Shown: positions 24,861 through 63,561 of the stretch, piece by piece
Numbering within the stretch: position 1 is the first letter of the stretch
Layout: each line of letters starts with the position of its first letter
Assembly (NCBI RefSeq): GCF_902713615.1
Contig: NC_052171.1
Span: forward strand, 1,426,001-1,490,000
DNA: 64,000 nt
Reading direction: 5' to 3'
Origin: Scyliorhinus canicula
Taxonomy: Eukaryota
The notes under the pieces: generated by a model
What the model was told of the DNA's origin: nothing
Seen by the model: only the letters and a program-made list of their open reading frames with translations
Database searches by the model: none
Position numbers and translations under genes: made by a program

Positions 24861-25183
24861 TGGGAAGGTGGCAGCTGCTCCACTTCATGCACAGCTCCAG
24901 GCTCTGTGATCACTCAGCAAACAGAGACAGGCATTAGAAAACAAATGCTTCAAATTAACCCCCAACTTCAGAAAACAACAGGCAGTTTGACCTTTCAGCT
25001 GAACAGCCTTGAAGTTAGGACTGAGTTCCTGTGAGAAAAGACGGCTGAGAGGAGATTTGAGCAAGAGGGATTGAAAATCATGAGGGTTCCAGACAGATTG
25101 AACAGGGAGAAAATGTTCTCACTCCTGAACGGGTTGAGAACAAGAGCTTAGAATTCACTGTACCAATTCTGTGCTCAAAGCTG

Positions 25184-30913: not shown

Positions 30914-31517
30914 GGGTGAAATTCTGGGGGCCGCCGAAAATCCGGCCCCCGCCGTGGCAGAGATTCTCCGCCACCCGGGAAGTGGCGGCGGCGGGAATCA
31001 TGCCACTCCGATCGGTGAGGCCCCTGCGGCGATTCTCCAGCCCACGATGGGCCGAAGTCCCGCCGCTGGGAGGCCTCTCCCGCCACCGAGGTTTGAACCA
31101 CCTCTGGTGGCGGCGGGATCGGCGGCGCGAGCGGGCCCCCGGGGTCCTGGGGGGGGCGGGGGGGGCGATCGGACTCCAGGGGGTGCCCCCACGGTGGCCA
31201 GGCCCGCGATCGGGACCCCCCGCTCAGACTCCGGGCCAGTGCCCTGGGTGCACTCTTTCTCCTCCGCGGCCATGGCGGAAGCGGAAGAGAAACCCACATC
31301 GCGCAAGCGCCGACCGGCGAAAGCCTTTCGGCCAGCCCTGCTGCCGGGGGCGCCGGTTTTTTGCGCCAGTCTTCTGGTGCCAACCGCTCCGGCGCGGGGC
31401 TAGCCCCCAGAGGTGCGGAGAATTCCCCACCTTTGGGGAGGCCCGACCCCGGAGTGGTTGGCGCCACTCCCCTACGCCGAGACCCCCCGTCACGCCGGGT
31501 AGGGGAGAATGCCGCCC
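30914..31517. mobile_element. GC-rich non-autonomous DNA element (MITE, possibly Harbinger-derived) in the L1 endonuclease
   Basis: Imperfect terminal inverted repeats GGGTGAAATTCT...AGAATGCCGCCC; removing it restores GKIP-DLYSHRLVMGGDIN; 2-3 bp (C)AG duplication. Confidence 0.75.
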
Positions 31518-36238: not shown

Positions 36239-36394
36239 CTAACCCAAGTGAGATTTGTTCCTTTTCTTCCGACCCCAGTTGCAGGATGGGTTACGGCGCT
36301 CCCATCCTGAGGTACAGCTACTTCTGTGGATCTGCACGTCATCAATTGCAGCATCGCTCTGATAGTTTGGTCCCAGTACGCCCTCAATAATCAC
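36239..36394 (-). CDS. Astacin-MAM last exon (MAM end plus basic tail)
   Basis: [27 protein letters not shown]...[11 protein letters not shown]; ctccag acceptor, phase 0. Confidence 0.9.
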   Translation of the reverse strand: MIIEGVLGPNYQSDAAIDDVQIHRSSCTSGWERRNPSCNWGRKKRNKSHLG

Positions 36395-39300
36395 CTGGAG
36401 AGGCAAAGATTAGTCAGATCTGGAAAGAGAAACTGGGCTACAGTGAAATGTTAATCACTTGATAACAGAAGTTAAAGCTTTGTTCAAGCTGCCGCTCATG
36501 GATGAAGAATAAACCGAGAAACAGACGGACATCACAGGAGGGAATCAGACCATTCGGCCCTATCAAAGTCAGCATTTATCCTTCATCCCTTTTGCTTGAA
36601 GCATTTGTCCAATTCAGCATATTACTGTCTCAACTAACCCTGGCATTGAAGTTAACAGCCTCGTGACTCTGTGTCAAGCAGTTTCCCTGCCTTACTTAAT
36701 CTAGTCGTCCTTTGGTAGCTCAAAACTTGAATATTGCTGAAAAAGAGACACGCTGTCTCAGCCTTTCAGCTTGAACTCCTCGGGACTGATTCATCAGAAT
36801 TGGAAGGAGAAACTATTTATATTGCATGGGAAGAGACTGCTCGTTGGTTGACGTGGACTCTGGTCGAGGCGTTGCCATGGACCAAGCAGCAGGGGATACT
36901 TAACGACCAAGCCGATTTCCACATGCAATGCCAATGTCTGGTTGCATTGCGAGGCCTCAGGTTCGATCCAGACACATATACCTGTAAACCCGACAAAATC
37001 TGAACAAGTGCGACTATGTCACCAAAATGAAGGTCATTGGCGCATTGGGCCACCCACGAGGCCTAACTGGACAGACCTGCTCAAAAGCAAGTTCCAAAAA
37101 ATGTTTGTTGGGCTTGTGTAAGAGTAACGAGCTGCTGGGTGGTATTTAATGATAGGATCCATCCTCACTGTTCACTGAGACCGTGCATCTATGGGTTGTC
37201 CAAGACACACAAAAACGGGGACTTCCGGTGTGCAGCATGGAGTGAGTGATCACACAGAGGCAGCTCCTGCCTAAGGTTACAGAAAAGAGCTCTTTTTTGG
37301 GCGGCACGGGTTGGAATTTCGATGAAAAGGCGTTGGTGAATGTTCGAGGAGTACTTTCCCCCAGGAATAGGATGTTTCTTGGTTATCAGACCCTCAGAAA
37401 CAGTGCAAGATTGGGCTGAAGCTACAGCAAACAAAAGCCTCTGCAAGCATACAGGCGGGGGAAGGGCCAGCTTAGAGGCCTCAAGCTGACCTGAGGGCCT
37501 TTGTGAAAGCTGAATTCTAGCAGCAGAGGGAAGAACTGTGAAAAGATCTCACCAAGGCCATTGAAGGAGCGGAGACGGACTTCCGGTAGCGGTGATGCGG
37601 AGCTAAGCCGCACGTTCAGTGGCTCCCACTATTTTCGGGCTTTGGGGCTCTTTTAAGGGCTCGTAGTGATGCTGTTTGGGCTTTTCCCCGTATGGGAACA
37701 CTCCTTCTCAGATTCTCCACCGGTGGATGGCCTGGACTAGGAGTGGAGCGGTCAGAAAATCGGCTTTGTAGGTGCGGCACCGCAGCTCCCGCTACTTAAG
37801 GACTTTTGGGCCGATTTGAGGGCCCCAAACGGCGCTGTCTCGACGAATCCCGGTGGGGGAAGGTGTCTAGAGGCGCATTCCCCATAATTTATGGTGCTCA
37901 CCCGGAGTGGGGCAAAGGAAAAAGCTGCAGCAGCTCCCCAAGAAAAGCGGGGGAAGAAGGACAAAATGGCGGCCGGCGGAACATCCGAGGACTGGTGGGC
38001 GCAGGAGCAGCAAGCCTCTCTTCTGCGCTGTTTTGTGGAGCTGAAGGCTGAGTTGCTGGACTCCCTGAATGCGACTACCAACAAGCTGCTTGGGGCTCAG
38101 GCGGCCCAGGAGGTGTCGATTCGGGAGCAGCAGGCCACTGAGCAGGAGGAGGAGGCCGTGGTCCTCGTGGGGAAAGTGTTGCACGAGGCATTTCACAAAA
38201 AGTGGCAAGACCGCTTGGAGGAGCTGGACGTTCGCACGAGGCGAAAGAATTTGAGGATCCTGGGCCTGGATGGGTCGGATCTCCCGTCTTACGTGACCAC
38301 GATGTTGAGCTCGTTGATGGGAGCGGGGTCCTTCCATTTGCCCCTGGAGCTTGAGGGAGCCCACAGAGTGCTGGCCAGGAGGCCTAAGGCAAATGAGCCC
38401 CCGCGGGCGGTGCTGGTGCGGTTCCATCGATTTAGTGACCGGGAGTGTGTGCTGCGCTGGGCCAAGAAAGAGAGGAGCAGCAAGTGGGAGAATTCGGTAG
38501 TGAGAATCTACCAGGACTGGAGTGCGGAGGTGGCAAAGCGGCGGGCCGGGTTCAACCGGACGAAGGCGGTGCTACATGCCAAGCAGGTCAGGTTTGGAAT
38601 GCTGTAGCCTGCGCGTCTGTGGGTGACATACAAGGACCGGCACCATTACTTCGAGTCCCCGGAGGAGGCGTGGGGCTTTGTACAGGCGGAGAAGCTGGAC
38701 TCGAACTAGGGTCTGGGGACACACTATGGCCGTTGCTGTTTTCGCTGTTGCTGTTCTTCAATTTTGACACGTGTTTTTTTTATGCTGGTTTTCTTTTGCT
38801 CTGTTTTCGGGTGGGTTTGTCTGTTGGGTATGGGTGTGGGGTATGTGGGGAACGTTGGGGGCATGTGCTTTATATGTTCTCTTCTGTACGGGGCTGGAGG
38901 TTGGGGTGAAACTGGATTTTGAGGAGCTGCGTCAGAAGGGTGGGGTGTGGCAGTGTGAAAGCGCGGGCTTTCCTCTGGTTTCCCGCGCTGCGGGGCGGGG
39001 GGGGGGCGGAGCTGGCGGTGGGGGCGGGGCCTTCACTGGTTTTCTTTCCCGCGCTGAAGCGGGGCCAAGGAGGTGTGGCAAGAGGGGGATGACCCCATGC
39101 CGGGAGGAGATGGGTTTTGGCAGGAGCTGCCGGGTCAGCAGAAGTCAGCTGACTCACGGAAGTACCATGGAGGGTGCGTCGCGGCTAGGAAGGGTCCTAG
39201 CCTGGGGGGGTGGGGGGGGATACCGGGTTGCTGCTGGAATGGCCAGGAAGGAGCTGGTGTGGGCCGGGGGGGTAGAGGAGAGGCGTTATCGCCATGGGGA

Positions 39301-42300
39301 ACGGGTCAGGCGGGGCGAGCTGGCCTGGGGCGAGCAGTCGATAAGCTATGGCTAGCCGGCGGGGGAGAGGGGCAGGTTGCCCTCTGATCCGGCTGATTAC
39401 CTGGAACGTGAGGGGGCTGAATGGGCCGGTTAAGAGAACTAGGGTAATTTCTCATCTGAAGGGGCTGAAGGCGGACGTGGCTATGCTCCAGGAGACCCAC
39501 TTGAAGGCGGCGGACCAGGTTCGTCTGAGGAAGGGGTGGGTGGGGCAGGTTTTTCACTCAGGATTGGACGCGAAGAACCGGGGGTTGGCGATTCTGGTGG
39601 GGAAGAGGGTGGCGTTTGAGGCGGCTGAGGTGGTGTCGGACAAGGAGGGCAGATATATTATGGTGAAGGGTAGGCTGCAGGGAGAGAAGGTGGTGCTGGT
39701 TAATGTATATGCCCCGAATTGGGATGATGCCGGCTTCATGAGGCGCTTGTTGGGCCGCATTCCGGACCTGGAGGCAGGGGGCCTGATCATGGGGGGAGAC
39801 TTTAACACAGTGCTGGATCCCACACTGGACCGGTCCAGTTCAAGGACGGGTAGGAGACCGGCGGCGGCCAAAGTGCTGAGGGGGTTTATGGACCAGATGG
39901 GAGGGGTGGATCCCTGGAGGTTTGGGAGGCTGAGAGCGTGGGAGTATTCCTTTTTCTCTCATGTCCATAGGGTCTATTCCCGAATAGATTTTTTCGTCCT
40001 GAGCAGGGGATTGATCCCGAAGGTGCAGGATGCCGAGTATTCGGCCATAGCGATTTCAGACCATGCTCCGCACTGGGTTGATCTGGAGATGGGGGTGGCG
40101 CGGGACCAGCGCCCGCTCTGGCGCCTGGATGTGGGGATGCTGGCTGATGAGGAGGTATGTAGGAGGGTCTGGGGAAGTATTGAGGGGTATCTTGATACCA
40201 ACGACACGGGGGAGGTCTGGGTGGGGATGGTCTGGGAGGCTCTGAAAGCAGTGATCCGGGGGGAGCTGATCTCCATACGGACCCATAGGGAAAGGAGGGA
40301 GAGGAAGGAGAGGGAGAGACTGGTGGGGGAGCTCCTGGATGTGGACAGGAGATACGCGGAGGCACCAGAGGAGGGGTTGCTGGGGGAACGGCGTAGTTTG
40401 CAGGCCAAATTTGACTTGTTGACCACCAGAAAGGCGGAGACACAGTGGAGGAGGTCGCAGGGCACGGTATACGAGTATGGGGAGAAGGCGAGCAGGATGT
40501 TGGCGTATCAGCTCCGCAGGCGAGATGCGGCTAGGGAAATTGGTGGAGTGACGGATAGGGGTGGGAATGTAGTGCAGATGGGGACAGAAGTAAATGGGGT
40601 CTTTAGGGACTTCTACGAGGAACTGTACCGGTCAGAACCTCCGATGGGGAGAGGGGGGATGGAGAGCTTCATGAACAGGCTATGTTTCCCAAGGGTTCAA
40701 GAGAGGCTGGTAGAGGGGCTGGGGGCGCCGATAGAGTTGGAGGAGCTAGTCAGGGGGATTGGACAAATGCAGTCAGGTAAGGCGCCGGGGCCGGACGGGT
40801 TCCCAGTGGAATTTTATAAAAAGTATGCGGATCTGGTGGGCCCCCTGTTGGTGTGAGCCTTCAATGAGGCATGGGAGGGGGGCGCCTTTGCCCCCGACAA
40901 TGTCGCGGGCACTGATCTCTCTGATCCTGAAGCGGGATAAGGACCCCTTGCAGTGTGGATCATACAGGCCTATCTCTCTCCTCACTGTTGACGCTAAGTT
41001 TCTGGCGAAGATCCTGGCCACCAGGATAGAGGACTGTGTGCCAGGGGTGATACACGAGGATCAGATAGGATTTGTCAAAGGACGGCAGCTCAACACGAAT
41101 GTGCGGAGACTGCTAAATGTTATTATGATGCCGGCAGTGGAGGGGGAGGCGGAGATAGTGGTGGCGCTGGATGCGGAGAAAGCGTTTGATAGAGTTGAGT
41201 GGGGGTACCTGTGGGAGGTGCTGGAGCGGTTCGGATTCGGGGAGGGATTCATCAAATGGGTAAGGCTGCTCTACGCGACTCCGATGGCGAGTGTAGTTAC
41301 CAATGGAAGGAGATCGGAGTACTTTAGGCTCTACCGTGGGACCAGGCAGGGGTGCCCTTGTCCCCCTTGCTCTTTGCACTGGCGATTGAACCTTTGGCTA
41401 TGGCGTTGAGGGAGTCAGGGAGATGGAGGGGTCTGGTGCGGGGTGGGGAGGAACATCGTGTATCGCTGTATGCGGACGACCTGCTGTTGTATGTGGCGGA
41501 TCCAGAAGGGGGAATGCCGGGGGTGATGGAGCTGTTAGCGGAATTTGGGGGCTTCTCGGGCTATAAGTTAAATTTAGCCAAGAGCGAGGTATTTGTAGTA
41601 CACCCGGGAGATCAGGAGGAGGGAATTGGGAGACTCCCATTTAAGAGGGCAGTGAAGAGTTTCAGATACCTGGGGGTGCAGGTGGCCAGAAGTTGGGGGA
41701 CTCTCCATAAGCTTAATTTTACCAGGCTGGTGGAGCAGATGGAGGAGGAATTTAAAAGGTGGGACATGGTGCCTCTATCGTTGGCGGGTAGAGTGCAGTC
41801 CGTCAAAATGACGGTTCTCCCGAGGTTCTTGTTCCTTTTTCAGTGTTTGCCCATCTTTATCCCTAGTGCCTTTTTTAGAAGGGTGACTAGCAGCATCATG
41901 AGCTTTGTTTGGGCGCCTGGGACCCCGAGGGTGAAGAGGGTCTTCTTGGAGCGGGGTAGAGATGGGGGGGGCTGGCGTTACCCAATCTCTCGGGGTATTA
42001 CTGGGCGGCCAATGTGTCGATGGTGCGCAAGTGGGTAATGGAGGGGGAGGGGGCAGCATGGAAACGGATGGAGAGGGCGTCCTGTGGAGATACAAGCCTG
42101 GGGGCCCTGGTAACGGCGCCGTGGCCGCTCCCTCCTACGAGGTATACCACGAGTCCGGTGGTGGCGGCTACCCTCAAGATTTGGGGGCAGTGGAGGTGAC
42201 ATAGGGGAGAAGTGGGGGGCTCGATGGAGGCTCCGTTAAGGGGGAACCATACGTTCGTCCCGGGGAACATTGATGGGGGATTTCAGGGTTGGTACAGAGC

Positions 42301-45300
42301 GGGCATCAGACAGCTGAGGGACCTGTTTATTGATGGGAGGTTTGCGAGCCTGGGGGAGTTGGAGGAGAAATTTGGGCTCCCCCCGGGGAACATGTTCAGG
42401 TATCTGCAGGTAAAGGCATTTGCTAGGTGGCAGGTGGAGGGATTCCCTTCGCTCCCCGCGAGGGGGGTGAGCGACAGGGTGCTTTCGGGGGTCTGGGTCG
42501 GAGAGGGGAAGATATCTGATATCTACAAGGTTATGCAGGAGGCGGAGGAGGCGTCAGTAGAGGAGCTGAAAGCTAAGTGAGAGGGGGAACTGGGGGAACA
42601 GATCGAAGACGGGACATGGGCTGATGCCCTGGAGAGGGTTAATTCTTCCTCCTCGTGTGCGCGGCTTAGCCTCATCCAATTCAAGGTGCTGCATAGGGCC
42701 CACATGACTGGGACGAGGATGAGTAGGTTCTTTGGGGGTGAAGACAGGTGTGTCAGGTGCTCGGGGAGTCCAGCGAACCATGCCCATATGTTCTGGGCAT
42801 GTCCGGCACTGGAGGAGTTCTGGAAGGGGGTGGCGAGGACGGTGTCGAGGGTGGTGGAGTCCAGGGTCAAGCCAGGATGGGGACTCACGATTTTTGGGGT
42901 TGGGGTGGAGCCGGGAGTGCAGGAGGCGAAAGAGGCCGGTGCTGGCCTTTGCGTCCCTTGTAGCCCGGCGAAGGATCTTGCTACAATGGAAGGATGCGAG
43001 GCCCCCAAGCGTGGAGACCTGGATCAATGACATGGCGGGTTTCATTAAGCTAGAGAAGGTCAAATTCGCCCTGAGGGGGACGGTACAAGGGTTCTTTAGG
43101 CGGTGGCAACCTTTCCTCGACTTTCTGGCTCAACGATAGGGTACAGGGACAGTAGCAGCAGCAACCCGGGGGGGAGGGGGGGAAGGGGGAGGGAAAAGGG
43201 GGGGGGGATGACTATGTTTGTTTATTTAATTTTAATTTATTTTTAAGTTTTTCTGTTGTTCATTGGGGTTGGGGGGGTGGGGGATGTGATACATGCGTCA
43301 ATATGGTCTGGGGGTGTTACAGTTATTATGGGTTATTTTGTTGCATTTCATTGTTTGTCGTTATGTTTTATACTTTCTGTAAAAAATTCCAATAAAATTT
43401 TTTTTTTAAAAAGACACAAAAACGATGTCTGTTTATGGCCATTGTTATCGGTGACTGGTTGTGCATAACATGAATTGTGCCAAATGGTTGGGTCAGTTGC
43501 TGCAACCACTTCTGTGCAGATTGTTTAGTTACATAGATGGTCGAGGATTGCTTCACCTTTACGGGGACACAGGGCTTAGATACCAATGGTGTATGTATAT
43601 GCTTGTTCAACATTGCGAGATTATTCATCAATGTTCCGCTCGAGGAAGCTAGTGATATTTTCACTGCATCACTACATCACGGCGATCTGGACACCTTGGC
43701 ATGGTCGGAATCTACTTATGAACTTGTACAGTTTTGTCTGATTTTGACAATGCCCAAGTATTTCCAAATAAATGGTCCAGCATCATTGTTGGTTTCCATG
43801 AGAAACACGTCTTCCATGGAATGACACCTCACCTCCTTATCTCTTGCATATTTGCGATACGTCAGCAATACGTTTGCTCTATTTGAATCCACATCTGCAT
43901 GTGAGAATTTCCTGACACACCTAGATGGCCGCCTTCCTGTGCTCAAACTCACCTTTGAAATGGGGCAGTCAAATGAGCTCCTTTTCCTCAATGTGCTGAT
44001 TGAGAAATCTGCCAACAGGCTCTCTGCAGCTATCTACCACCAGCCTATCTTCGTTGGTCAATGGAAGCTTTCGAATCCCTACAATGCCACGTTCTATAAG
44101 ATTGTCCTGATTGCGAACCTTGCTCATACAGCCCGAGCCATTCGCACACCATTGGCGCATCAAAGCTATCCTGTGGATTCTAGCTACCCTGATCAGATCA
44201 CTGCCCACTGTATATCGCACAAACTCATCAATCAGCCTTCGGATGCCACTTTCATTCCTAGGAAGTGTCCAGTCACCCTCCGATTGCCCTGGGATAATGT
44301 ACCTCAAACTTTCGAGCACGAGGTGAAGCTATCACGCTGTCACTAAGCAGTAGCAAGACAAGTAGTGCTCTCCACGGACAGGATGCTGCTGTCAAACCAA
44401 AAACACCACAAATGAGTCACAGTTTTTTTTTTACTTTCGATGCCCTCTGTCCCAATAACTGGCAGATTGTATCAAACAGTATATCCCTTCGCTGCTCACA
44501 ACAGGAAAAGGACTGACTGTACCCAACAAGCGTTTTCTTGCAAAACTCAAAACGTAGGCCGGGATATTCAATCCCGTTTTCTGAAGAAAATCCAGCAGGA
44601 ATCCCAAAATGGCTTTTCCGCCGGGGGATTTCCTCGCTGGATTGCAATGATGGGAACCCCATTGAAATACACTTTGATATCATGAGCGGACTCTCCCTGC
44701 TCTGTTAATCCCCCCCCCCCCCCCCCAACATTGTGGTGGTGTGGGTGAAGCGATGCATTTAGCCCACATGCTCTGGGGTTAAGTGTGACAGAGAGGTAGT
44801 AATGGAGTCATCTGTACGTCTGGTTCCCAATTTATCGCAGACAAAAACACACACTGTCCATATCCTGTATCTAACTCCCAGCATTACAGGACATAAGTAT
44901 GAGACATAAATGTCTCATCTTCGCTTGCCAATTACTGATATGTAGATGATCAGTTCTGATGTTGCTGCGCCAACAGCAATCAGCATGATCATCCCCAAGA
45001 CCTACTCCGCTGGCCACTGCACAGCACATTTTGCGACGCATATGTTCACTTGAAGAAGCCACTCAACCATTCGAGAAAGTAACGAAAAGCTGCCTTAGCC
45101 TGCCCAAGACACTGGTCACCAATCTGTGAGGAATGTCGACTCCTCATGCAACAAGCAACCCCACCCCCGGGGACAGGGGGCAGGCTGGAGGCCTCGTGGT
45201 TTGCAACGGGCAGTGGACTTGAGCCGTCCCAGCAGAGAAGCTCCACCTTCAAATTGTGATCACGAAACGATTCGCATCGGACAGCAGTGAGGGGAAATAA

Positions 45301-51300: not shown

Positions 51301-54300
51301 GGGGAGTGTCCGCAGGGGGAGTGTCAGCAGGGGGAGTGTAGGCCCGGGGAGTGTCCTCAATGACAGTGGGTGCCAACAGCGACTCCACCGATGATAGCGG
51401 ACTGTCCGCATGGGCTGTGGAGGCCAGCAGGGAGTTCTCTGGGGGAGTGGAGGCTAGCAGAGTCTGCCCAGGGAGAGTGCTGTCCGGCAGCATCTGTGCT
51501 GGGGGAGTTGAAGCCAGCAGGTTGTCTGCATGGGGAGTAGAGGTGAGCAAGGTGTTGGCAGGACCAGTGGAGGCCAGTAGCATTTCTGCAGGGTCAGTGG
51601 GGGCAAGCAGGGTGTCCTCAGGGTGAGTGGGGGCAAGCAGGGTGCCCTCAGGGTGAGTGGGGGCAAGCAGGGTGCCCTCAGGGTGAGTGGGGGCAAGCAG
51701 GGTGCCCTCAGGGTCAGTGGGGGCAAGCAGGGTGCCCTCCGGGTCAGTGGGGGCAAGCAGGGTGCCCTCAGGGTGAGTGGGGGCAAGCAGGGTGCCCTCA
51801 GGGTCAGTGGGGGCAAGCAGAGTGCCCTCAGGGTCAGTGGGGACAAGCAGGGTGCCCACAAGGGGTATAGAGGACAGCTGGGTATCCGCAAGGGGAGTGG
51901 ATTTCAGCACGTTCTCCGTTGGGTGTACGGGCCCCAGCAGGATGTCCGTAGAGCGAAGGGGCTCTACTCGGGCATTTACAAGGGCAGCGGAGGCCAACAG
52001 CGACTTCACAAGGGACATGGACTGCAACAGCATCTCCGTAGGGGAAGTGGGCGTCAGGTGAGTATGTGTTGGGGCAGTCCTGGTTGTCACCAGAGGGTCA
52101 CACACTTTCAATGCCTTGTTCCATCTTGCTAAACAACCAATTTTCAGGTGAGAAGACAGTCTCTTTGTGTGCAAGGTCACGGTTGGTGCCTTCTTCTGTG
52201 AGGCCATATCGATCTGCACACGGGGACTTTCCCCAACATCTGTACGAAGAATTCCAGGTGTTATTGTGGTTCCAGTTCCTGGAATCGTCGACTGCACAGT
52301 TGGCACCTTCAATTGATTGGCTGGAGTCATTATTTCCAAGTGTCCAGTTAGTTGTGTCTTGAAGACTGGCCAAATGGGCAATCTTTCATGTCTCCGTTTA
52401 CAACTTTGGCAGAGAATGGCAAATCGTTTTGGATAAATAGCATTGATCAGAACGGGCGGAAACCCAGACGCTGACGAAGATTGTTGTACAATATTGGCTG
52501 CTTGTGTGTGCGTGTCTGCTTCATCGCTCCAAGTGATTGGCCGAGGCCCCTGGCGTCGAGTGGTCAATGAGTCAGCCGAAAACAGCACTGACCCGTGAGT
52601 CTGGTTGCCGGATTTAAGGAAATGGGGAGTTACAGGCAACAGTTCAATCTGCCCAAATAAATTTTGGCTTTGCTGGTGCAGAATTGGTTCCTTGCTCATG
52701 CGCCTGGTGCATCCCTTGGGGCAAGGTGCAGGTGGTTGAGTCAGAGTCCGCCTGGTCAGTGCAGGAGACATGATGTGCAGAAGGGGGTGAGTGGTTTTCA
52801 GGTTTGTGCTCACACTCTGAGCAAAAGGCAGCTCAGTGCGAGTGGGAAACAGTGTCTCAGCTTTTTGACTTTGGTCCTGTGCCACAACAGACAACTCCAC
52901 CTGGTCCCCAGAAGCTTCAGGAGCCTTCACCGCAGCTATGACCGAGGCATTGCGGATGAACGCAGCTCCCGACTTAGTTGGCCAAGAAGTGGGTGAGCAC
53001 GTACCTTGTCGAAAGCATTCACGATATCCATGGGTAGTGGTCGTGGTGTGGTTTCCTGTGGACCCATTCCCACTCAAACTCCAAATCAGCTGCGCTGATG
53101 TGTCAACTCTCACTTTCACTGTTTCAGGATAGATACCCAAGAGAAATTTTAATCTCCCTGCTTCTTTGGCTCTTCCAAGTTCGTGCAAGGAACCATCTTC
53201 ATTCAGCATTTGAAGACCTAGGGTATTTTGGGTGCAGTGGGAGGGGAGGAAATAGAATAATTTAAATAGGCTTTTGCAACTTTAATAGTTCAGCTCTTCA
53301 GGTTTAATCAATTATAGAACAATATAGAAGAAAGATATTCAGCCCACGGTGAGTGTGCAAGCTCTTTGTTAGAGCTATTCAATTAGTCCCTTTCCCCTCT
53401 TCAGTCTGATGCTATCTTCTCTTCACCATTCCAATATTTATTCATAAAGGACAGCATGCAGCGCAGTGGTTAGCACTGGGACTGCGGCGCTGAGGACCCG
53501 GGTTCGATCCCGGCTCTGGGTCACTGTCCGTGTGGAGTTTGCACATTCTCCCCATGTCTGCGTGGGTTTCACCCCCACAACCCAAAGATGTGCAGGGTAG
53601 GTGGATTGGCCAATGCTAAGTTGCCCCTTAATTGGGAAAAAAAAATTATTGGGTACACTAAATTTATATTAAAAAAAAGACACAAAATTTAAAAAAATAT
53701 ATCCATAAAACCATAAGGCATAGGAGCAGAATTGGGCCATTCGGCCCATCGAGTCTGCGCCGTCATTAAATCATGGTTGATATGTTTTTCATCCCGATTC
53801 TCCTGCCTTCTCCCCATAAAGCATCCCCAGGGGCTGCTTTCGCACAGTGGGCTTGTAATGCAGAACAAGGCCAGCAGCGGGGGTTCAATTCCCGTTCCAG
53901 TCACCCCGAACAGGCGCCGGAATGTGGCCACTAGGGGCTTTTCACAGTGGCTTCATTGAAGCCTACTTGTGACAATAAGCGATTATTGTTATTATTAACC
54001 CCTGAACCCCTCAATAAGACATAGGAGCAGAATCCAGTCACCATTCGAACTACTGCCAGGGTTTCAGACAGGGCATTTGAGATCGTAACTCACGGCACGT
54101 ACACTCTGGGCCTGTTACTCATCACATTAAACCTGTGTTTTCTGGCTAACTATCCTTCCGCCATTGGATAACAGTTTCTCTTATTTTACACCATCAAAAA
54201 AATATATATACATGTCGCCATACATATTATTTATACGAGCCATATAAATATAGTCGCTACATAAGCAGGTCAGAAGCTCAGAATCCTGCAGTGAGTAACT

Positions 54301-57300
54301 CACCTCCTGACTCCCAAAGTCTGCCACCATCTACAAGGCACAAGTTGCGCCTGTGATGGAATATTCCCCACTTGCATGGATAAGTGAAGCCCCAACAACA
54401 CTCAAGAAACCCAACACCTATGAGGCCAATATAAGGACAAACCTGATTGGCACCCAATCCACAAATATTCACTTCCACAGCCACTGACACACAGCGGCTG
54501 CCGTCTGCACCACCTGCAACATCACTGCAGGAACTCACCAAGGATCCTTCGGCAGCACCTTCCAAACCTACGGCCCCTACCTTCTCACAGAACAAGGGCA
54601 GCACCATCACCTGGAGGTTTCCCTCCAAGCTTCCGATCACCCTAACTTGGAAATATATCGCCGTTCCTTCAGTGTGGCTGGAACTCCATCCTTCGCAGCA
54701 CAATGGATGTACCTACACCACATGGACTGGAGCGGCTCAAGAGAGCAGCTCACCCCCCCCCCCCCACCTTCTCAAGGGTACTTCGGGAGAGGCAACAAAT
54801 GCTGGCCGAGCCAGTGATGCCATATCTCATGAATGATTTTGATCGCCACCATCAAGTCTCCTCCACTCGAAGAAGTAAAATCTGAGAGGCTTCACGTCGA
54901 GGCAGAATGCTGAGTGTACTGGGGAATCAGTATGATTTTGTAGTTGAGGCACTGATTGGATAGGCAGCCCCTCGCGATAGGAAAGAGGGAATAGCTGACC
55001 AGAACAATTCCATGTTGTTTCAACAGAACATCACCAGGTGTCGTGCTGCTGCTTGTGAAGGTGTCAGTGGGCCAGAAACCCCCCCCTCCCCGAAAAACAG
55101 GCAAACTGCACCAAGTTAATGACTGAAAATTATTGTCTACAGACACACAGAAAGAGGAAAAAAAGGCCTGTGAACAACACAAACAGGAAGACGTGACTCA
55201 AGGCTGTTCTGTGAAGGACATGCAGTGGAAAAGAAGGGAATGTGCTCAACCACAACTCCTGGTATGCCACTGATTTAAACCATGGAAACCAAATCAGCAG
55301 AATTCCTCTTCAAAGGGCATTTCAATCACAAGCAACAAAGCAAGGTTTCCACCGACTGTGCTTTTGAGGGTAGATGCTTGTTATGAGATCACGACCTTCC
55401 TTATGTCTCTGCAATACAAAAACATATACAAGCAGCGTTCTGTCCCAACACTTAGATATACTACATACCATTCTCCCTGTACAATGCCATTCTTTATCAC
55501 GGAGATAAAAGGGTTCACTGTTTATTAAAGATGGACACTCGTCTCCCCAGCTCAGGGAAGGCACATCTCCAAACTTCCCTGCCAAGAACCATGAGCTTTC
55601 CACACCTGATCATGCACGTGGCTGCTGTCATGAACTAGCTTGAGAGATTATGGAGGTGGCTCTTGACTGAAAGCTTCTTTTCTATGGGACGTTGCAAAAC
55701 AAAGCTGCAGCATTGAGTCTCTGCAAAAGATTGTATTCAGCTGCCCATAACTATTGTTTAAATCATCGCGCCGTGCGCAGTTCTCCAGAGCCTAGACAGT
55801 TTCTCAATCCAATTCAGAAACTCCCAAAGCAACTCATGGTTTGATTTTAAGAAGATAAATAACTATCGGCAATTTATTGTTAAAAATAATTCTTTTTTTT
55901 TTTCCTCCTTCCAAATTAGAGGATTCAGGGGGCAAGCAGACCAGTGCCAGGTGGAAATAAAACACTGGTGGGGTCCATGAAATTAAACTAACAGCAGCAC
56001 AGGGGGAATCCAAGGAAATGAACTCGAGTTCAAATTGACTACGCTCATAGACAAGAGACCAGCAAAAACTCGTGATTGATTTATTTTGTGCTTTCACACA
56101 CAGGTTGAACAGGATCGGGGCCTATTTGAATCAGCTGCGAGGAGTCAAACATTCTCTGAGAAGGACTTGTTCCTAACACCCTTACGTTTCACCACATTCG
56201 CCTTATCTTTGAGGTGGGTGGTGCAGTTGTAGAGCCGATTAACCTTCACCAAGTCCAGCTCACTCAGGCGAATGCGTTGGCCGAGCACAGTATCCGTATC
56301 CATCAGCGGTCTCAGGGTTGGCTCTCTGTTCTTGGAAAATGCAGTCCTACAATTGGGAAAGAGTTTTATTGCACATTAAGGCAGAAATCATGAAAAAAAA
56401 ACTGATGTTTACGGAGCACCTTTAACACAATGAAATGTTGTTTCATGGGAGCACCGTCAAAGAAACTTTGACACCGAGCCACATGAGAAGCAATGAGGAC
56501 AGAGGATAACAGGCTTGGTCAAAGAGGGAGATTGCTTCATAAAAAAGGACGGAGGTTCAGATTTAGGGAAGAAATTAAAGAGCGTGAGCCCAGGCCACCA
56601 ATCGTAGTGCTGTGATAAAAATCAGGGATGAACAGGAGGCGGGAACTGGGGCAGTGCGGGTATCATAGAGGGTTTCGGACTGGAGTAGGTTACAAACATA
56701 GGGAGGGGACATGGTCACATAGAAATTTGAAAACAACTATTACAAATTATTTTGGGAAAGAAAGGTGTTGCTGAATCGGGAACTAATGGTGTTCAGTCAA
56801 TAAAGGGATTATCGGTGATTGGGACTTGGTGCAATTTAGGATACGGGCAACATCAGCTTTGGATGAGTTCAGGTTTACAGTGGGGGCAAGATACTGGATG
56901 ACATGCGAAGTGAGACTTACTGGGCTGCGACTTAGCTCAGGGCTTCACAGCAGTTGTGAATATATTGCGTGCCCAGGGATGTTCCTCAGGCTTTGCTGTT
57001 ACCTCCAGCTAAGGCCATAAAGAGAGAGAGAGAGAGAAGTGGTTGCAATTCCAACTCCCCACCACACTCACCTACTGTAGTGCAAGATGGAGCCATAATC
57101 ATATTTGGTCTTGAGATTGTTGGTGTTTTGCTTCAAGAAATTATGTTCATAGCCTGAAAGAAAAGTCAGGTGTCTGTTGGCATGTGCGAGAGCAAAACAG
57201 AACTACATTTCGTGAAGGTATTTTTGTTCATCAGTATGTCTTGCTGATCTAATAAAATCATTCCATGACAAGCCATTGGACACCTTTATAACAGAAACAA

Positions 57301-60300
57301 ATCCACCCAACTGGCTTGAACTTTAAGCACTCTTCCCCTGCAACAGGACCCATTGATTGTGAGGGAGCAATTTTACAGCAGGTTCATTCTGTGTTTCAAG
57401 CCCATCTCAGTTTCACACATCTTGGTTGAATGCTCAGATTGTTAAGACTGGCATATTGCTGCTTGCCCCTCCTCTGGCTGCACTTCCAAACAGAGTCTTG
57501 GAAGGAAATCTCACAGTCCACGTAGGAGAAGGTCTTTAGTTCTGTGTGTGCCCCCAAGAGAAGACTGGAGGGACTGATCTGACAGGCGTCTTCAAGACTA
57601 TGAAAGGGCATCTGTGGAGAATACTTTTCTGTTGGCCAGTAAAAGCAAAACCAGGGGGCATCAATAAATCCAATGGAGAATTCAGGAGAAACGTCCTTCC
57701 CCAGGGAGTGGTTATTATGTGCAACTTGCAGATGAGTCAAGTATTGCAGCTGCGTTTAAGAGGAAACCAGATAAAGAAGGGAAAGGTAACAGAAGTGTAT
57801 GTTGATGGGGTTAGATGACAAAAGACGGGAGGAGGCATATGTCGAGCATGAACACTGGCACGGACCTGCTGGGCTGAATCGTCTGTTCAATATGTCTCAG
57901 GGCCCCCAAGGCACTGAGATAACCTGAGTTTGGCTAAAGGGCCAGTCTGCTAGCAGGGAATTCCCACGGCTTGCGTTTGGGGTGGGAGGGCGGGGAGTGT
58001 AAAGGAAAGAAACACTTTACCAGGCCACACGTTCTTCCACTCAATTTTGATGAATTTGTCTCGATCACTCCTTGCATGCTCGTGCCAGAAGCCAAGTGAG
58101 TGCATGATCTCATGTTCAACAACCCCCTTCCCCTTCTTCAGGCACTGGTGATTGAGTGAGATTAGCTGCATCCCTCCAATGCGGCCCACGGACGAGTAAC
58201 ACCTGAGAGAGACACAGAAACATGGCCATTCAAATCATTCACAAATTGTAACTTGCCGCAACGCTCCGTGAACAAACTGAAGGTTTACGGCCACGAGCAA
58301 ATGAGAAAGACCCGGAAACCGAATGGAGCAGTCACTCAGACATTCTCACTGAAAGATGAACACCACACAAAACAAATTCAAGTGCCGCTCCAGCAACGTG
58401 AACATGTAACCCAGGCTGACACCCCGATGCAGTGGTGAAGGGGTGCTGTACTGTTGAAGGTGCTATCTTTCAAATTAGACATTAAACTACTGGACGTAAA
58501 CAATCCCACGGCATCGTTTGGAGGAAAGCAGGAGAATTCCTCTCATGTCTCATGACACGAGGAAACAGAGTCTGGAAATGCCACATTCCTTGCTACCTTT
58601 GGCCAGTCACTTGTGTTCCTGGGGAACGTTACCAGTGTACTGGAAGCATCACCCAGCTCAACTGCAATCAGCAGGCAACCATGACACAGAGAGAACCATG
58701 ACACAGAGGGCAGCAGGGTAGCATGGTGGTTAGCATAAATGCTTCACAGCTCCAGGGTCCCAGGTTCGATTCCCGGCTGGGTCACTGTCTGTGTGGAGTC
58801 TGCACGTCCTCCCCCTGTGTGCGTGGGTTTCCTCCGGGTGCTCCGGTTTCCTCCCACAGTCCAAAGATGTGCGGGTTAGGTGGATTGGCCATGATAAATT
58901 GCCTGTAGTGTCCTAATAAAAGTAAGGTTAAGGGGGGGTTGTTGGGTTACGGGTATAGTGTGGATACGTGGGTTTGAGTAGGGTGATCATGGCTCGGCAC
59001 AACATTGAGGGCCGAAGGGCCTGTTCTGTGCTGTACTGTTCTATGTTCTAACACGGATCAGGGCCACTGCACCATGGCCTCCACAATTTGTACATACCCG
59101 TGGATGGGCTGAATGGAAATGAAGTCCTCCTCATCACTGTGAGGGGCAAACCGTACACAGGTGAACTTCTCAAAGTCCTTGAAACCTCGGCTGATGGAGC
59201 TCCTGGTCTCCTCATCTGGAGAAGAAGAATATTAGGTTTTGTTAATGAAGTAAAAACCTGAACTCAAAACAGAAAATGGAAATGCACTGCAGGACAGTCA
59301 ACATCTACAAAGTGTGAAAATGAAAAAGACAAGTTGCTACTTTTGTGTAGATTTCCTGCATGCTCCTCTCTCTGGCAAATGTTGATGAACCTTGCCTGTA
59401 TTCCTATTGTGCTTTGAATGCTTTTTCACATTTAGAATTACGGGATGTTAAAAACATAAGAAATAGGATCAGGAAAGACCATAGGACCTGCTGAACCTGC
59501 TTGAGTTTGTCTTTAACTCCACTTTGCTGCCCCCTCCCCATATCCCTTCATTCTCAAAGAATGACACAGAATTGTTATTGTGCAGAAGGAGGCCATTTGA
59601 TCCACAGAGTCTGCTCCGCCGTTCAATCATGACTGATATGTTCCTCAGATCCATTTTCCTGCCTTCTCCCCATAATCCCTGATCCCCTTATTAATCAAGA
59701 AATTCCCTCATGAATCTAGAACACCAGACTTGTGTTTGAGGGGCTGTTCCCTCCAGGGTCCCAGACCAAGAGCTGGAAGGTGGAATTAGACACAATAGTT
59801 CTTTCTAGGAACGTAAGAAGTAGGAGCAGGAGTGGGCCATATAGCCTCTCGAGCCTGCTCCACCATTCAATATGACCATGGCTGATCTCATCCTGGCCTC
59901 AATCCCACCGTCCTGCCCGTTCTCCGTAACCCTTTAACCCAGTACTAATTAAAAATCTGTCTAACTCCTCCTTCAATTTACTCACTGTCCCAGCATCCAC
60001 TGCACACTGGAGTAGTGTCCATTCCATGCCTGCTTTATCCACACCTTTTATCAGGTTATATACCTCAACTTGATCTCCCCTCATTATTCCAGCCAGTGCA
60101 TTCATTCCAGACCCCAACCACTCGTAGTGTGAAAAAGTTCCTTCTCACGTCACACTCATTTCTTTGCAAATTACTTTAAATCTGTGCGGCAAATGCTTCT
60201 CCCCAACTACTCTGTGCAGCCCCCTCATGATTTTGAACATCTCTATCAAATCTCCTGTTCCTCTCGCCAAGGCGAACAGTCCCAATATATGCAATCGATC

Positions 60301-63300
60301 CTAGTTTCTCAACCCTGGATCCGTTCTTGTAAACTACTTTTGCACTCTCTCCAATATGCTCCCATCCTTCCGAGTGTGGAACCAAGAACTGGACACAATA
60401 TTCCAGCTGAGGTCCAATTAGTGTCTTGTATAAATTCATCTCTTGCTCATGCCCCAATGAATTAAGCCCAGAGTACTCTCTGCTTTATTAACTGCTCTCT
60501 CCACCTGTCCTGCCATCTTCAATGATCTGTGCAGTTATACGTCCAGGCTCCAGCACCCTGACTAAAAATCCATCGCAGCCTTAAACAATCCAAATACCCT
60601 CAGGGTAGACAACTCAACCTCCTTAGGGGAGACAACTCCAAAGATGGACAACTCTTTGAATGAAGAGGTTTCCCCCAATCTCAGTCCCCTCTTTCCTGAG
60701 ATTATGCCCCGTGTCTAGATTCCCCAGATGGAAGAAACATCCTTCCAGTGTCTATCCTGTCAAGTTTCTATATATCACCTCTCATTCTTCTGAACTCCAG
60801 AGACTCAATTTACTCAACCTCTCATCAAAGGACAGCCTTCTCATCCCGGGAACCAATCTAGTGAACCTTAGTTACACTGGCTCCAATGCAAGTATATCCT
60901 TCAGAAAAACGGAGACCAAGATTCTGTGCATTAGCACAGCTTGGTCTCAGCAATACTTTTATCCTTCTTCTCCAATCCCCTTGCAATAAAGGCCCTCCCA
61001 ATTGCTTGCTATATTGCATGCCAACTTTGTGTTCCTTGTATGAACACACCCATATCCCTCTGAAAATCAACATTTGCAAGTTTCACAACTTTTAAAAAAT
61101 ACTGTAATTTCCTATTGTTCCAAACAAAGTGAACGATTATACTCCATCTGCCACCTTGTTGCCCAATCACTGAACCTGTCCAGAATATTTCCAACATCTT
61201 TGTGTCCTCCTCACAGGTTGCATTCCCACTTAGCTATGCATCATCAGCAGACTTAGGGGCATTATTCGGTCTCTTCGTCTCCAACATTCAGATAGATTGC
61301 AAGTAGCTGAGGCCCCAGCACTGATGCTTGTAGAACACCACTAGTTCTAGCCCGCCAAGTAGAAAATGTCCTTCTTCCTCTATGTCCAGTCCGTCAACCA
61401 ATCCTCTACCCCTGTCAAGAGATTCCCCCTAACTCCAGGAGTCCTTATCTTGTGTATCAACCTTTGGTGCGGCACCTTATCTAACACCTTCTAAACATTT
61501 AGTATACTACATCAGCTGGTTACCCTTCATTTGGTCCACACATTACTTGTTCAAAAAACCCAACTAAATTTGTCAAAGATTTTTAAAATTATGTTGACTT
61601 TGACAGTCCTTCACGTTTCTGAGTGCATTTTAAGTGAAGTCTTTCTTCATGGCAAATTCCAGTACTTAGCCAAGACCAGAGGTAGTTTGCTGTTTTCTCT
61701 CACTCCCTCCTGTATTAATCTAGCTGTTCCTTCGTAAACTAGCAGGTGCTATTTACAGAACACTGAAATACAAGCTTATGGTTGGGGTGAAGTACAAAGA
61801 CGGAACATCAGCATCTCACCACCCAGAAAGACAATTCACAATGTGACCCCGATGTGGAATCAGAGTCACAATCCCAAACAGTTTGTATGTGCCCTCGAAC
61901 ATGAAATCTGACTATTTCTAACCCCAGGTTCTCACTCAACACTTACCGTACTTCTGAGATATTTCGTATGGAATTCTCACCACCCCATCTGGCGATTTCT
62001 GCCATATCTTGGTTTCAGACACTACAGCATTCTTCCACAGCTGATTGGAAGGGCAAAAGAGAGAGCAAGTTGCAGTCACCCAGCATCCCGCCCAACATAC
62101 AACAAGCATTGACAATGAACCAGAGATTTCAGTTTTAAACCAATGTGTCTATCTCGGAGCTAGAAAAATATCGGATCACCAAGGAATCAACTCAAGTGCA
62201 GCTTTTAGGTCACCATCAATATGGAATGGAGCAATCAAACTAAAACATGCAAATTGAAGCATAAAATTCGACAATGAAAAGACAACTAATTCAACATGTT
62301 TGTGATCATTGTCTACAAGGCACTCTGTATGTTGCTGTGCCCAAGGGTCATGCAAGGCTGAATGCTCCCTTCCCAGCGTCACGGTGGCATGGACATGATC
62401 ACAAACGAAAGGCCAGGGAACTAGAGGTACCCCCTCCACCCCCATGGCATCCCCTCCATGCCCCATTTCTAACCACTCCCCCAATCTTGGGCATGACTAG
62501 TCCACACCTGTTCTGACCCAGTCCAGGAGCAGATCCATGAGAAGTCACGAGAAGATCCCCCAACCGACCCAACCCTCCACTTTCCATGCCTTAAGACCAC
62601 AAGATATAGGAGCAGAATTAGGCCATCACCCCACCTCCTCCCCCCGCCAATATCTAAGCGATGTGGGGCAGTGGAGCATCACACATACATCTGGAAAAAG
62701 GACAGGGTCACGCTGGAAAGGAACTTACAGGTTTGATAATGTCCCCTTCGATGAGGAAGCTCCTCCAGGGCTTTTCATATCGAAAGATACCTATAAACCA
62801 GGAGAGAAAATGGGAGCAGTTTTATCTGACAGCCCAGGATGATGTCGAGTATTCAGAAGATAAATAAATCAACACAAAGCAATTTACAACACAGTGACCA
62901 CTTAAACATTTGCAGCAAGGAGTTGATTTTAAATTGCTGCAACAAGTACTCACGGAGTGGGTAACTTTCTGAAGAACAGTTCCATTTTTGGTGGCTGGGC
63001 TAGGGTAGGGCTCCAGATTTCCAGTCAGGAAACTCAATTTCCAGATGCAGGCAAGTATTCACATTCAGTCCTTCAGCCATCAATAGCGGTGGCAAAAGAG
63101 TAGCTTACCCCCACTGACAGTGAAATAAACAGAGGTGTTAACTCAGAAACTTACGCTGGTTAATCCTGACAATTGCATCCTCTGCTGTAAGGGTAGTCTT
63201 GGTTTGAACAGTATCCAGACGAAGGCTGCTGACTTGTTTCTTAACCTCGGTCTGTCTGACTGCTGCAGTATTAACAGAGACAGTTGTTACAACGGAGCGA

Positions 63301-63313
63301 TTGGAATATCTTG
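36239..63313 (-). CDS. ASTL: Ovastacin-like astacin metalloprotease with giant mucin-like domain and C-terminal MAM domain (at least 11 exons, 6,548 nt reconstructed, 5' end incomplete)
   Basis: Propeptide FLIEGDI, zinc motif [25 protein letters not shown]...VN.LY.C, MAM motifs; all introns GT-AG and in phase. The symbol reflects recalled similarity to ovastacin; orthology unproven. Confidence 0.8.
36750..37216 (+). mobile_element. Penelope-like element, 5' part
   Basis: Ends in [12 protein letters not shown], matching the PLE RT motif YGLPKxHK; continues at 43414. Confidence 0.7.
37217..43413 (+). mobile_element. Near full-length young L1/Tx1-clade LINE, antisense in the last intron; ORF1 37891-38709 (premature TAG at 38605), ORF2 39348-43139 (few stops and frameshifts)
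   Basis: Endonuclease TWNVRGL, LQETH, GGDFN, SDH; RT YADD; CVRC..H..C; AATAAA at 43391; target-site duplication ACACAAAAAC at 37207-37216 and 43414-43423. Confidence 0.95.
43414..44555 (+). mobile_element. Penelope-like element, 3' part (decayed RT)
   Basis: [59 protein letters not shown]. Confidence 0.75.
44557..45330. mobile_element. Possible Harbinger-derived relic
   Basis: Begins GGCCGGGATATTC like the 30914 element end; faint transposase-like fragments. Confidence 0.3.
45681..45811 (-). CDS. Astacin-MAM gene, MAM exon
   Basis: [36 protein letters not shown]...YQ; ttgcag/gtgagt. Confidence 0.93.
46190..46372 (-). mobile_element. HE1-type SINE
   Basis: Head and core recognisable. Confidence 0.7.
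46519..46644 (-). CDS. Astacin-MAM gene, MAM exon
   Basis: [23 protein letters not shown]...[14 protein letters not shown]; ttacag/gtgagt. Confidence 0.94.
47941..53217 (-). CDS. Giant 5,277-nt exon: spacer, PTS/mucin repeats and MAM N-terminus
   Basis: Stop-free ORF; ccctag acceptor and G/gtgaga donor, phase 1-1, matching both neighbours; ends in [10 protein letters not shown]...DDFDW...GTGPKWDHT. Confidence 0.88.
48330..51355 (-). repeat. Coding tandem repeat, 30-bp unit with 15-bp half units, TPPADTP(R/Q/W)A(Y/S/F), about 100 copies
   Basis: Direct reading of sequence and translation. Confidence 0.97.
51590..51860 (-). repeat. Second coding 30-bp repeat PT(D/H)PEGTLLA, about 9 copies
   Basis: Direct reading of sequence and translation. 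Confidence 0.95.
53449..53996 (+). mobile_element. Short HE1-type SINE (53449-53680), CR1 tail fragment and second-family SINE (53829-53996)
   Basis: Match to copies elsewhere in the window. Confidence 0.75.
54255..54835 (+). mobile_element. CR1/L2-superfamily LINE 3' relic
   Basis: [23 protein letters not shown]. Confidence 0.65.
56186..56346 (-). CDS. Astacin domain C-terminal exon
   Basis: [13 protein letters not shown]...[20 protein letters not shown]; ttgtag/gtaagg. Confidence 0.94.
57072..57153 (-). CDS. Astacin Met-turn exon
   Basis: [28 protein letters not shown]; tttcag/gtgagt. Confidence 0.95.
58021..58202 (-). CDS. Astacin zinc-binding exon
   Basis: [16 protein letters not shown]...[19 protein letters not shown]; tctcag/gtaaag. 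Confidence 0.97.
58708..59050 (+). mobile_element. Young full-length HE1-type SINE
   Basis: Near-identical to 17601-17953. Confidence 0.9.
59098..59215 (-). CDS. Astacin domain exon
   Basis: [40 protein letters not shown]; ctccag/gtatgt. Confidence 0.95.
59450..61720 (-). mobile_element. Cluster of CR1 LINE fragments
   Basis: [43 protein letters not shown]1 tails. Confidence 0.75.
61947..62040 (-). CDS. Propeptide/mature junction exon
   Basis: LWK|[28 protein letters not shown]; aatcag/gtaagt. Confidence 0.93.
62729..62790 (-). CDS. Propeptide exon with aspartate switch
   Basis: [20 protein letters not shown]; ttatag/gtaagt. Confidence 0.92.
63155..63313 (-). CDS. Propeptide exon
   Basis: ...[11 protein letters not shown]; cttcag/gtaagt; phase 1-1 fits the next exon. 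Confidence 0.75.
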
Positions 63314-63561
63314 CTGAAGCAACAAAGTGAAAAACAGCCACTACCTCTCAGTGCAAGTGCCAAGGTGAGAAATAGGAATTGCCACACTCTTCCGCCCATG
63401 ACTGAGGAGAAATCTCAAAAGCTGCCAGAAATGGTTCCTGGAAACATCAGGAGGGAATAAAGAATGATTAACATGGGAACTAATCACTCATGTTGGCATT
63501 CGAAACATGTCTGAAAGGTCGGATCAAATGCAACTTGCAATTTGATCAAAGCCATTCTCAC

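Follow-up and report, generated by a model that had tools for sequence, protein, structure and literature searches.

A gene on the minus strand of a 64,000-nucleotide window from the catshark Scyliorhinus canicula (assembly GCF_902713615.1, contig NC_052171.1, positions 1,426,001 to 1,490,000; positions given below are those of the window) is, in our judgement, likely to be the orthologue of ASTL, the gene of ovastacin, and is predicted to encode a secreted astacin zymogen with what seems to be the ancestral vertebrate ASTL architecture. The gene model was assembled from open segments and splice junctions, with domains assigned by Pfam on the exon translations and repeats by Tandem Repeats Finder (TRF). 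It runs from 63399 to 36239 and has 12 exons with coding lengths of 55/108/62/94/118/182/82/161/5277/126/131/156 nt; all introns are GT-AG, the phases are compatible, and the 6,552-nt coding sequence specifies 2,183 amino acids (aa) with a single terminal stop. In the product a propeptide, an astacin domain with four Cys, a giant Pro/Thr-rich region, a MAM domain and a basic tail follow one another, the order proposed by an earlier sequence-only reading of the stretch, with the Pfam matches colinear and the Cys counted. That reading had put the start at 63313 and counted 11 phase-consistent exons; the phase consistency held and its 62/94/118/182/82-nt exon series reappeared exactly in the rebuilt model, but the coding exons are 12, and the signal-peptide exon (63399-63345) begins 86 nt further upstream.

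Exon 1 (63345..63399; all exons lie on the minus strand) carries the start codon and the signal peptide, 18 aa plus 1 nt, and its N-terminus is identical to that of the RefSeq protein XP_038641587.1 (P0154). The signal peptide (MGGRVWQFLFLTLALALR) is followed by a propeptide with an aspartate switch, which begins in exon 2 (63155..63262), continues in exon 3 (62 nt, 62729..62790), where the switch motif FLIEGD (FxxEGD) is found at 62741-62758, and ends in exon 4 (94 nt, 61947..62040) together with the predicted mature N-terminus NAVV (from 62031). The catalytic domain extends over exons 5 to 8, with colinear pieces of the Pfam Astacin profile (PF01400; MEROPS family M12A) covering positions 18-189. 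Exon 5 (118 nt, 59098..59215; profile positions 18-51) contains the first conserved Cys; exon 6 (182 nt, 58021..58202; positions 57-112, E 7e-24) the catalytic core with two Cys and the intact zinc-binding consensus HExxHxxGFxHExxRxDR at 58058-58114; exon 7 (82 nt, 57072..57153; positions 117-144) the Met-turn region, with SILHY at 57077-57091; and exon 8 (161 nt, 56186..56346; positions 146-189) the domain end with the fourth Cys (LYNC) and the start of the linker. The four Cys, at aa 126, 147, 166 and 275, correspond to two disulfide pairs. The 3' end of exon 2, ...EDAIVRINQ, aligns with the cortical-granule motif DKDIPAINQ of mouse ovastacin (PMC5293279), with an intron at the matching place; this alignment, partly conserved, is only a hint of kinship with ASTL. 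As an ASTL-specific marker the motif was dropped, similar D-I-x-x-I-N stretches being found in the propeptides of meprins and hatching enzymes.

Behind the catalytic domain, 1,714 residues lead to the MAM domain, almost all of them from exon 9 (5,277 nt, 47941..53217), so that the mucin stalk of about 1,700 aa announced by the sequence-only reading is confirmed in size. From 5' to 3' this exon consists of a 1.36-kb non-repetitive part, 9 copies of a 30-nt unit (51589-51857), about 98 copies of another 30-nt unit (48342-51356, 85-88% matches by TRF) and a short unique part that ends in the start of the MAM domain. The main unit is translated as the Pro/Thr-rich decapeptide TPPADTPxAx, present in about 100 copies. 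The stalk as a whole contains 21.6% Pro, 16.7% Thr, 15.1% Ala and 7.6% Asp, with 22.8% Ser plus Thr, and is net acidic (164 acidic vs 96 basic residues). Long Pro/Thr/Ser-rich tandem repeats inside one large exon are the mark of a mucin-type Pro/Thr/Ser region, and from this composition dense O-glycosylation of the stalk is predicted. For the first 440 aa of the stalk exon a single relative was found, an "uncharacterized protein" of the horn shark (1,343 aa, P0001), with 49% identity; it presents, in the same order, a propeptide, Astacin (9e-58), Pro/Ser/Thr/Leu-rich repeats, MAM (4e-39) and a basic tail. The non-repetitive part (51858-53217, minus strand, aa 288 to about 740) also holds four close Cys pairs, at aa 355/361, 453/457, 557/560 and 649/660, at least two of which have horn shark counterparts as judged by eye, and its role may go beyond that of a plain spacer.

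The MAM domain is complete (Pfam profile positions 1-158) and spread over four exons. It begins within exon 9, about 49 aa before the end of that exon, which corrects the sequence-only reading on this point; this first part carries CDFEHGLC at 48059-48082 (profile positions 1-39). Exon 10 (126 nt, 46519..46644; positions 44-85, E 1.9e-6) and exon 11 (131 nt, 45681..45811; positions 89-125) encode the second and third parts, and exon 12 (156 nt, 36239..36394; positions 132-158) the end of the domain with its last Cys (36314-36331), an extra Cys in the tail, the short basic tail itself and the stop. In addition to the four canonical Cys there are two extra ones, Cys 2042 (47955-47957, minus strand) in a DHT..GxC loop and Cys 2170 (36281-36283, minus strand) in the tail (PSC). 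Sharks, chimaera, lamprey and bowfin have both of them conserved, frogs lack them, and a third disulfide or a bond between molecules might result from the pair; the combination of basic tail and extra Cys pair was seen only in chondrichthyans, lamprey and bowfin among the sequences compared. Outside the signal peptide no transmembrane segment was found by a hydropathy scan, the best Kyte-Doolittle window of 19 residues reaching 1.57 and containing Lys, Asn and Arg, in agreement with the sequence-only reading, and Pfam on the exon translations returned no MATH, EGF or CUB domain.

The assignment to ASTL was examined by phylogeny of the catalytic domain. Relatives were gathered by searches with the horn shark catalytic region; 250 catalytic domains were analysed with FastTree, and 90 rows of 204 columns, vertebrate BMP1/tolloid sequences not being among them, with IQ-TREE under LG+C20+F+G4 (supports are ultrafast bootstrap, UFBoot, and the Shimodaira-Hasegawa-like approximate likelihood ratio test, SH-aLRT). 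In the IQ-TREE topology, with which the FastTree placement agrees, the catshark falls within the chondrichthyans (100/99), which are nested in an ASTL clade of 42 rows (96/80). The order within the latter, lamprey, chondrichthyans, bowfin, amphibians and then sauropsids plus mammals, with marsupials beside eutherians, follows the species tree. The clade of hatching enzymes and C6astacins (94/90) is its sister, the two together reaching 100/98, and the meprins (100/100) lie outside this supergroup, among invertebrate astacins. When the MAM columns were added, the ASTL-MAM proteins stayed together (91/93) and the meprin branch measured 1.57 changes per site. The catshark domain therefore groups with ASTL and not with meprins or hatching enzymes, albeit with marginal support from topology tests (see below), and the claim of the sequence-only reading that the catalytic sequence resembles mammalian ovastacin stands in this sense, except that the Met-turn has to be corrected to SILHY, with Leu and not Met.

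The architecture of the relatives points in the same direction. Proteins with an N-terminal Astacin and a C-terminal MAM domain were found in sawshark (1,462 aa), chimaera (1,162 aa), lamprey (733-737 aa), bowfin (480 aa), many frogs, including Xenopus tropicalis (918-972 aa), turtles (up to 2,790 aa), lizards and snakes (1,536-1,854 aa) and the marsupial Sminthopsis (1,915 aa, MAM 1719-1877). Pfam E-values in the orthologues lay between 1e-38 and 1e-58. A stalk and a MAM domain are present in every non-eutherian full-length ASTL-clade model examined, and a MAM match in none of the eutherian ASTLs tested. As in the catshark, the Pro/Ser/Thr-rich stalk of these predicted proteins lies in exon 9, although its length is very variable (exon 9 measures 270 nt in bowfin and 963 nt in lamprey, and the turtle protein totals as much as 2,786 aa) and the repeat units are unrelated between species. 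The 12-exon plan, with a variable ninth stalk exon and MAM exons of about 126/131/140 nt, is common to lamprey, bowfin, Xenopus, Sminthopsis and catshark; the lamprey series is 76/99/62/94/118/176/82/140/963/126/134/141, and there too, by arithmetic from the exon lengths, the MAM domain starts about 49 codons before the end of exon 9. We consider that the protease-stalk-MAM layout, extending from lamprey to marsupials, is probably ancestral for vertebrate ASTL. Outside the vertebrates, Limulus LAST_MAM and Hydra HMP2, compared by their description (PMC9848320), likewise have Astacin and then MAM without MATH, EGF or transmembrane segments, but in that description the MAM domain is placed behind the catalytic domain, with no mention of a giant mucin-type spacer.

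Eutherian ovastacin, in mouse and human the cortical-granule protease that cleaves ZP2, shares with the catshark protein the signal peptide, the propeptide (...I..INQ, with the intron placed as in mouse), a four-Cys catalytic domain that is 46-50% identical, membership of the same clade, a non-globular region after the catalytic domain and the exon series 62/9x/118/182/82. The match of this series with mammalian ovastacin, which the sequence-only reading had pointed out, was found in the shrew Suncus, whose ASTL exons are 62/91/118/182/82/140 followed by three small C-terminal exons. Eutherian ovastacin differs in its mature N-terminus (PFRL... vs NAVV), in the Met-turn, where the catshark has Leu, and above all in its C-terminal region, which is disordered, 120-170 residues long and devoid of MAM, as opposed to 1,714 stalk residues plus MAM in the catshark. 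A signal peptide, propeptide and catalytic domain (S-PRO-CD) plus a short disordered C-terminal region is thus a description of eutherian ASTL only, and not of the whole orthogroup.

Gene order connects the MAM-bearing genes of tetrapods with eutherian ovastacin. The next gene after ASTL in shrew, dunnart (Sminthopsis) and Xenopus tropicalis, on the same strand and no more than about 1 kb away, is an intronless seven-transmembrane (7TM) gene, and the three 7TM genes are orthologous to one another (55-72% identity). Upstream of ASTL lie a DSPc gene in shrew and a START gene in frog; the 7TM, DSPc and START genes we take to be ADRA2B, DUSP2 and STARD7, neighbours of human ASTL. Because they adjoin the same 7TM gene, the frog and marsupial MAM-bearing genes are positional orthologues of eutherian ovastacin. 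The Xenopus tropicalis gene itself (972 aa; L003 10001-25683) is located between the START-domain gene and the intronless 7TM gene. The neighbours in lamprey and bowfin (GATase and SMC genes) are unlike those of the tetrapod ASTL.

Several observations weigh against the assignment of the catshark gene to ASTL. When the shrew, dunnart and Xenopus 7TM neighbours were searched against the window by tblastn no match was obtained, the 36 kb downstream of the gene included, where only remains of long interspersed nuclear elements (LINEs) were seen, and the basking shark gene has an EMP24 gene next to it on the upstream side. A single RefSeq product of the catshark was found, an isoform named X3, which omits the stalk, and the full-length exon 9 is known here from genomic prediction. 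In the Met-turn, for which the family consensus is SxMHY with Tyr as the fifth zinc ligand, the catshark protein keeps Ser, His and Tyr, and Leu replaces Met. Finally, in approximately unbiased (AU) tests the alternatives received p 0.046 (chondrichthyans with hatching enzymes), p 0.068 (chondrichthyans outside the supergroup of ASTL and hatching enzymes) and p 0.17 (chondrichthyans with meprins; p 0.11 with the MAM columns). The AU tests reject these alternatives weakly, and the tree alone is not decisive. With respect to the Met-turn, Leu also occurs in the ASTL-clade proteins of lamprey, of all 10 chondrichthyans examined, of most frogs examined and of a caecilian, a softshell turtle, two birds and an anteater, and Met is retained in bowfin, most reptiles and most mammals. 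Since it is common to so many members of the clade, Leu would be a lineage trait and not damage, an exchange that recurs at a position almost invariant in metzincins.

The AU value of 0.046 bears on the possibility that the gene belongs to the hatching enzymes or C6astacins and is not an ASTL orthologue, the name ASTL being used loosely for both groups in non-mammals. These enzymes, defined by six conserved Cys and by a CUB domain in non-teleost members, with a synteny block of syt13/prdm11/cd82 (PMC8812170), form the sister clade of ASTL and have the core exons 118/179-182/82 in common with it. Hatching enzymes are also nearest among the solved structures, as the best PDB matches of the exon 6 region are the zebrafish and medaka hatching enzymes and astacin, and the mature N-terminus NAVV resembles their RNA(I/M). 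Even the names would fit, for the ray orthologues carry automatic names such as low choriolytic enzyme-like, and proteins of turtles and birds that belong to the hatching-enzyme clade are named ASTL. Nevertheless, the catshark domain has four Cys and not the six of hatching enzymes (PMC8812170), a contrast that the sequence-only reading had drawn in the same way; hatching enzymes end in CUB or have no C-terminal domain, without stalk or MAM; and the maximum-likelihood tree puts the catshark in the ASTL clade (96/80), with the hatching-enzyme clade (94/90) as its sister. The exon pattern together with stalk and MAM is that of lamprey, bowfin, frog and marsupial ASTL, unlike that of the turtle hatching enzyme, 63/141/118/179/82 followed by CUB exons. 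We therefore regard membership of the hatching-enzyme group as quite improbable.

The reading implied by the RefSeq name of the catshark protein (XP_038641587.1, "meprin A subunit beta-like isoform X3"), an astacin with MAM akin to meprin alpha or beta, has in its favour that meprins, which are secreted or membrane proteins, likewise combine an astacin catalytic domain with a MAM domain, that the AU tests do not reject a clade of chondrichthyans and meprins (p 0.17 and 0.11), and that the first MAM intron appears, by arithmetic from exon lengths and alignment, at the position and phase found in lamprey meprin beta. In our reading, the AU result mostly reflects uncertainty of the root around the long meprin branch, which joins the tree close to where the ASTL clade begins. 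Meprins otherwise form a clade of their own (100/100) on a very long branch, away from the supergroup of ASTL and hatching enzymes. In the meprins compared, the MAM domain abuts the catalytic domain (MAM 266-432 after catalytic 76-261) and is followed by MATH/TRAF (Pfam MATH_2/TRAF-mep_MATH), EGF and a transmembrane segment, much as the sequence-only reading had it, whereas in the catshark protein 1,714 residues separate the two domains, without MATH or EGF by Pfam or a transmembrane segment by hydropathy. The exons before the 118-nt exon are 38/85 in meprin versus 62/94 here (lamprey meprin beta, 38/85/118/179); of the ASTL exon plan, lamprey meprin beta and the turtle hatching enzyme have only the 118/179(/82) core. 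Moreover, the shark MAM domain is nearer to the MAM domains of MDGA1, neuropilin and enteropeptidase (E 1e-27 to 1e-15) than to those of meprins (1e-9 and 5e-6). A meprin-like identity thus seems highly improbable, and the RefSeq name is not supported.

The isoform itself raises the question of whether the tether exists only on paper, the stalk being mostly spliced out or the astacin and the mucin/MAM parts being separate transcription units. Isoform X3 is identical to residues 1-358 of the model plus exons 10-12. It uses a strong consensus donor inside exon 9 (CAAG/GTACGT, 53005, minus strand), joins aa 358 directly to exon 10 and omits 1,688 residues, that is, the stalk and the first ~45 aa of the MAM domain. 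No long catshark isoform was found in searches expected to reach one, and the basking shark and Antechinus loci were split into two genes by the annotation pipelines. On the other hand, the coding frame of exon 9 shows no stop in 5,277 nt. The alternative frames are interrupted by 31 and 15 stops within the non-repetitive 5' part (1,360 nt), where the openness of the coding frame is therefore not due to the repeat, and this part is 49% identical at the protein level to the horn shark protein over its whole length. The phases of exons 8 and 10 fit both ends of exon 9, and in lamprey, frog, turtle, squamates and a marsupial the full length is modelled as a single gene whose ninth exon is large. 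The isoform X3 product would be without the first two Cys of the MAM domain, which looks non-functional; isoform X3 may have arisen through faulty annotation, or it may be a product that is regulated or has no function. A tether absent from the protein is, on these grounds, rather unlikely.

Having favoured the orthology with ASTL, we can place the loss of its C-terminal modules. The sequence-only reading had supposed an ancestral MAM domain later lost in mammals; the ancestral part holds, whereas a mammal-wide loss does not, because the marsupial Sminthopsis keeps the MAM domain and the eutherian ASTLs tested are without it. Loss of MAM and of the long stalk on the eutherian stem is thus supported by the sequences compared. 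In the MAM domains of marsupial ASTLs (Sminthopsis P0312; P0167) the third and fourth canonical Cys are replaced by Trp or other residues, which suggests a decay of the domain preceding the eutherian loss. When the C-terminal regions of nine eutherian ASTLs were compared by blastp with the post-catalytic regions of 17 non-eutherian proteins, nothing significant was obtained with the low-complexity filter on or off; as no similarity is detectable, the homology of the eutherian region and the stalk would be positional only. With moderate confidence, we propose that ovastacin derives from a vertebrate-wide single-copy protease-stalk-MAM gene, that its eutherian C-terminal region is the remnant left after shrinkage of the stalk and deletion of MAM, and that the non-mammalian orthologues, including the Xenopus gene beside the ADRA2B-type receptor gene, are prime candidates for the zinc protease that acts on ZP2/ZPA after fertilisation.

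How such a protein might work can be outlined. Cleavage immediately in front of NAVV would free the zymogen of its propeptide and so activate it. Mucin domains usually measure about 0.25 nm of extended length per residue, and on this basis the stalk, if heavily O-glycosylated and stiff, would act as a spacer and span several hundred nm. The MAM domain, which elsewhere serves in adhesion and oligomerisation, could fix the C-terminal end to a matrix, to a cell-surface partner or to another copy, with the protease working on a leash or being shed through a cut in the stalk. By orthology to mammalian ovastacin, the likeliest setting would be the oocyte or egg envelope, with limited cleavage of coat proteins of the ZP (zona pellucida) type; the sequence-only reading had named egg coat, egg jelly or mucus as possible sites of action. 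Against this functional part stands the fact that elasmobranchs are physiologically polyspermic, so that a mammal-like block to polyspermy is perhaps not the role of the catshark enzyme, which may be put to a different use in elasmobranch eggs. The egg-coat role of the mouse enzyme is described in PMC3317803 and PMC12281054.

In the literature, one review considers ASTL "phylogenetically not orthologous" to the non-mammalian astl proteins and the origin of its C-terminal region "still unknown" (PMC12281054), another lists for ovastacin nothing but a disordered domain behind the catalytic one (PMC9848320), and which frog egg protease cleaves ZP2 is described as an open matter (PMC7155028). To these reviews the catshark locus and its relatives offer an alternative, a conserved orthologue with an extra module of stalk and MAM, whose loss can be dated to the eutherian stem and which points to a way in which the enzyme may be retained in the coat or on the surface of the egg. 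The denial of non-mammalian orthologues may be due in part to the name ASTL on turtle and bird proteins of the hatching-enzyme clade. No description of an ovastacin or ASTL with a MAM domain, of its reptile, marsupial or Xenopus orthologues, or of a Scyliorhinus astacin was found in the openly accessible literature. The layout is, however, already in many automatic database models and is not unique to the catshark, and the weight of the finding lies in comparative evidence and gene predictions and in nothing unique to the window. Most of the protease-stalk-MAM proteins in databases are named astacin-like metalloendopeptidase; the misleading names that can now be corrected are, besides meprin A subunit beta-like, "proline-rich protein 36-like" (sawshark), "mucin-5AC-like" (an older Xenopus model) and "apical endosomal glycoprotein-like" (the MAM part in Antechinus).

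Several repeats accompany the gene in the window. Intron 11 (9.3 kb, 36395..45680) contains LINE remains antisense to the gene, with an endonuclease open reading frame at 39345-40853 (plus strand; Pfam Exo_endo_phos, 1.3e-17) and a reverse transcriptase fragment at 41328-42035 (plus strand; RVT_1, 9e-12). A second reverse transcriptase fragment (32576-33097, plus strand) is found downstream of the gene, within LINE remains at 30600-33200. The stretch 23852-24934, probably a simple tandem repeat, is GC-rich and open in several frames on both strands; it is translated as Pro-rich repeats (PCHPFLPP...), for which Pfam gave no match. Finally, a short interspersed element occurs on both strands at many sites, for example 4454-4780, 7031-7343, 10471-10830, 12561-12923 and 53441-53668, and its translations contain ...CKLHTDSDP...LGP...EA..LTT.PP.

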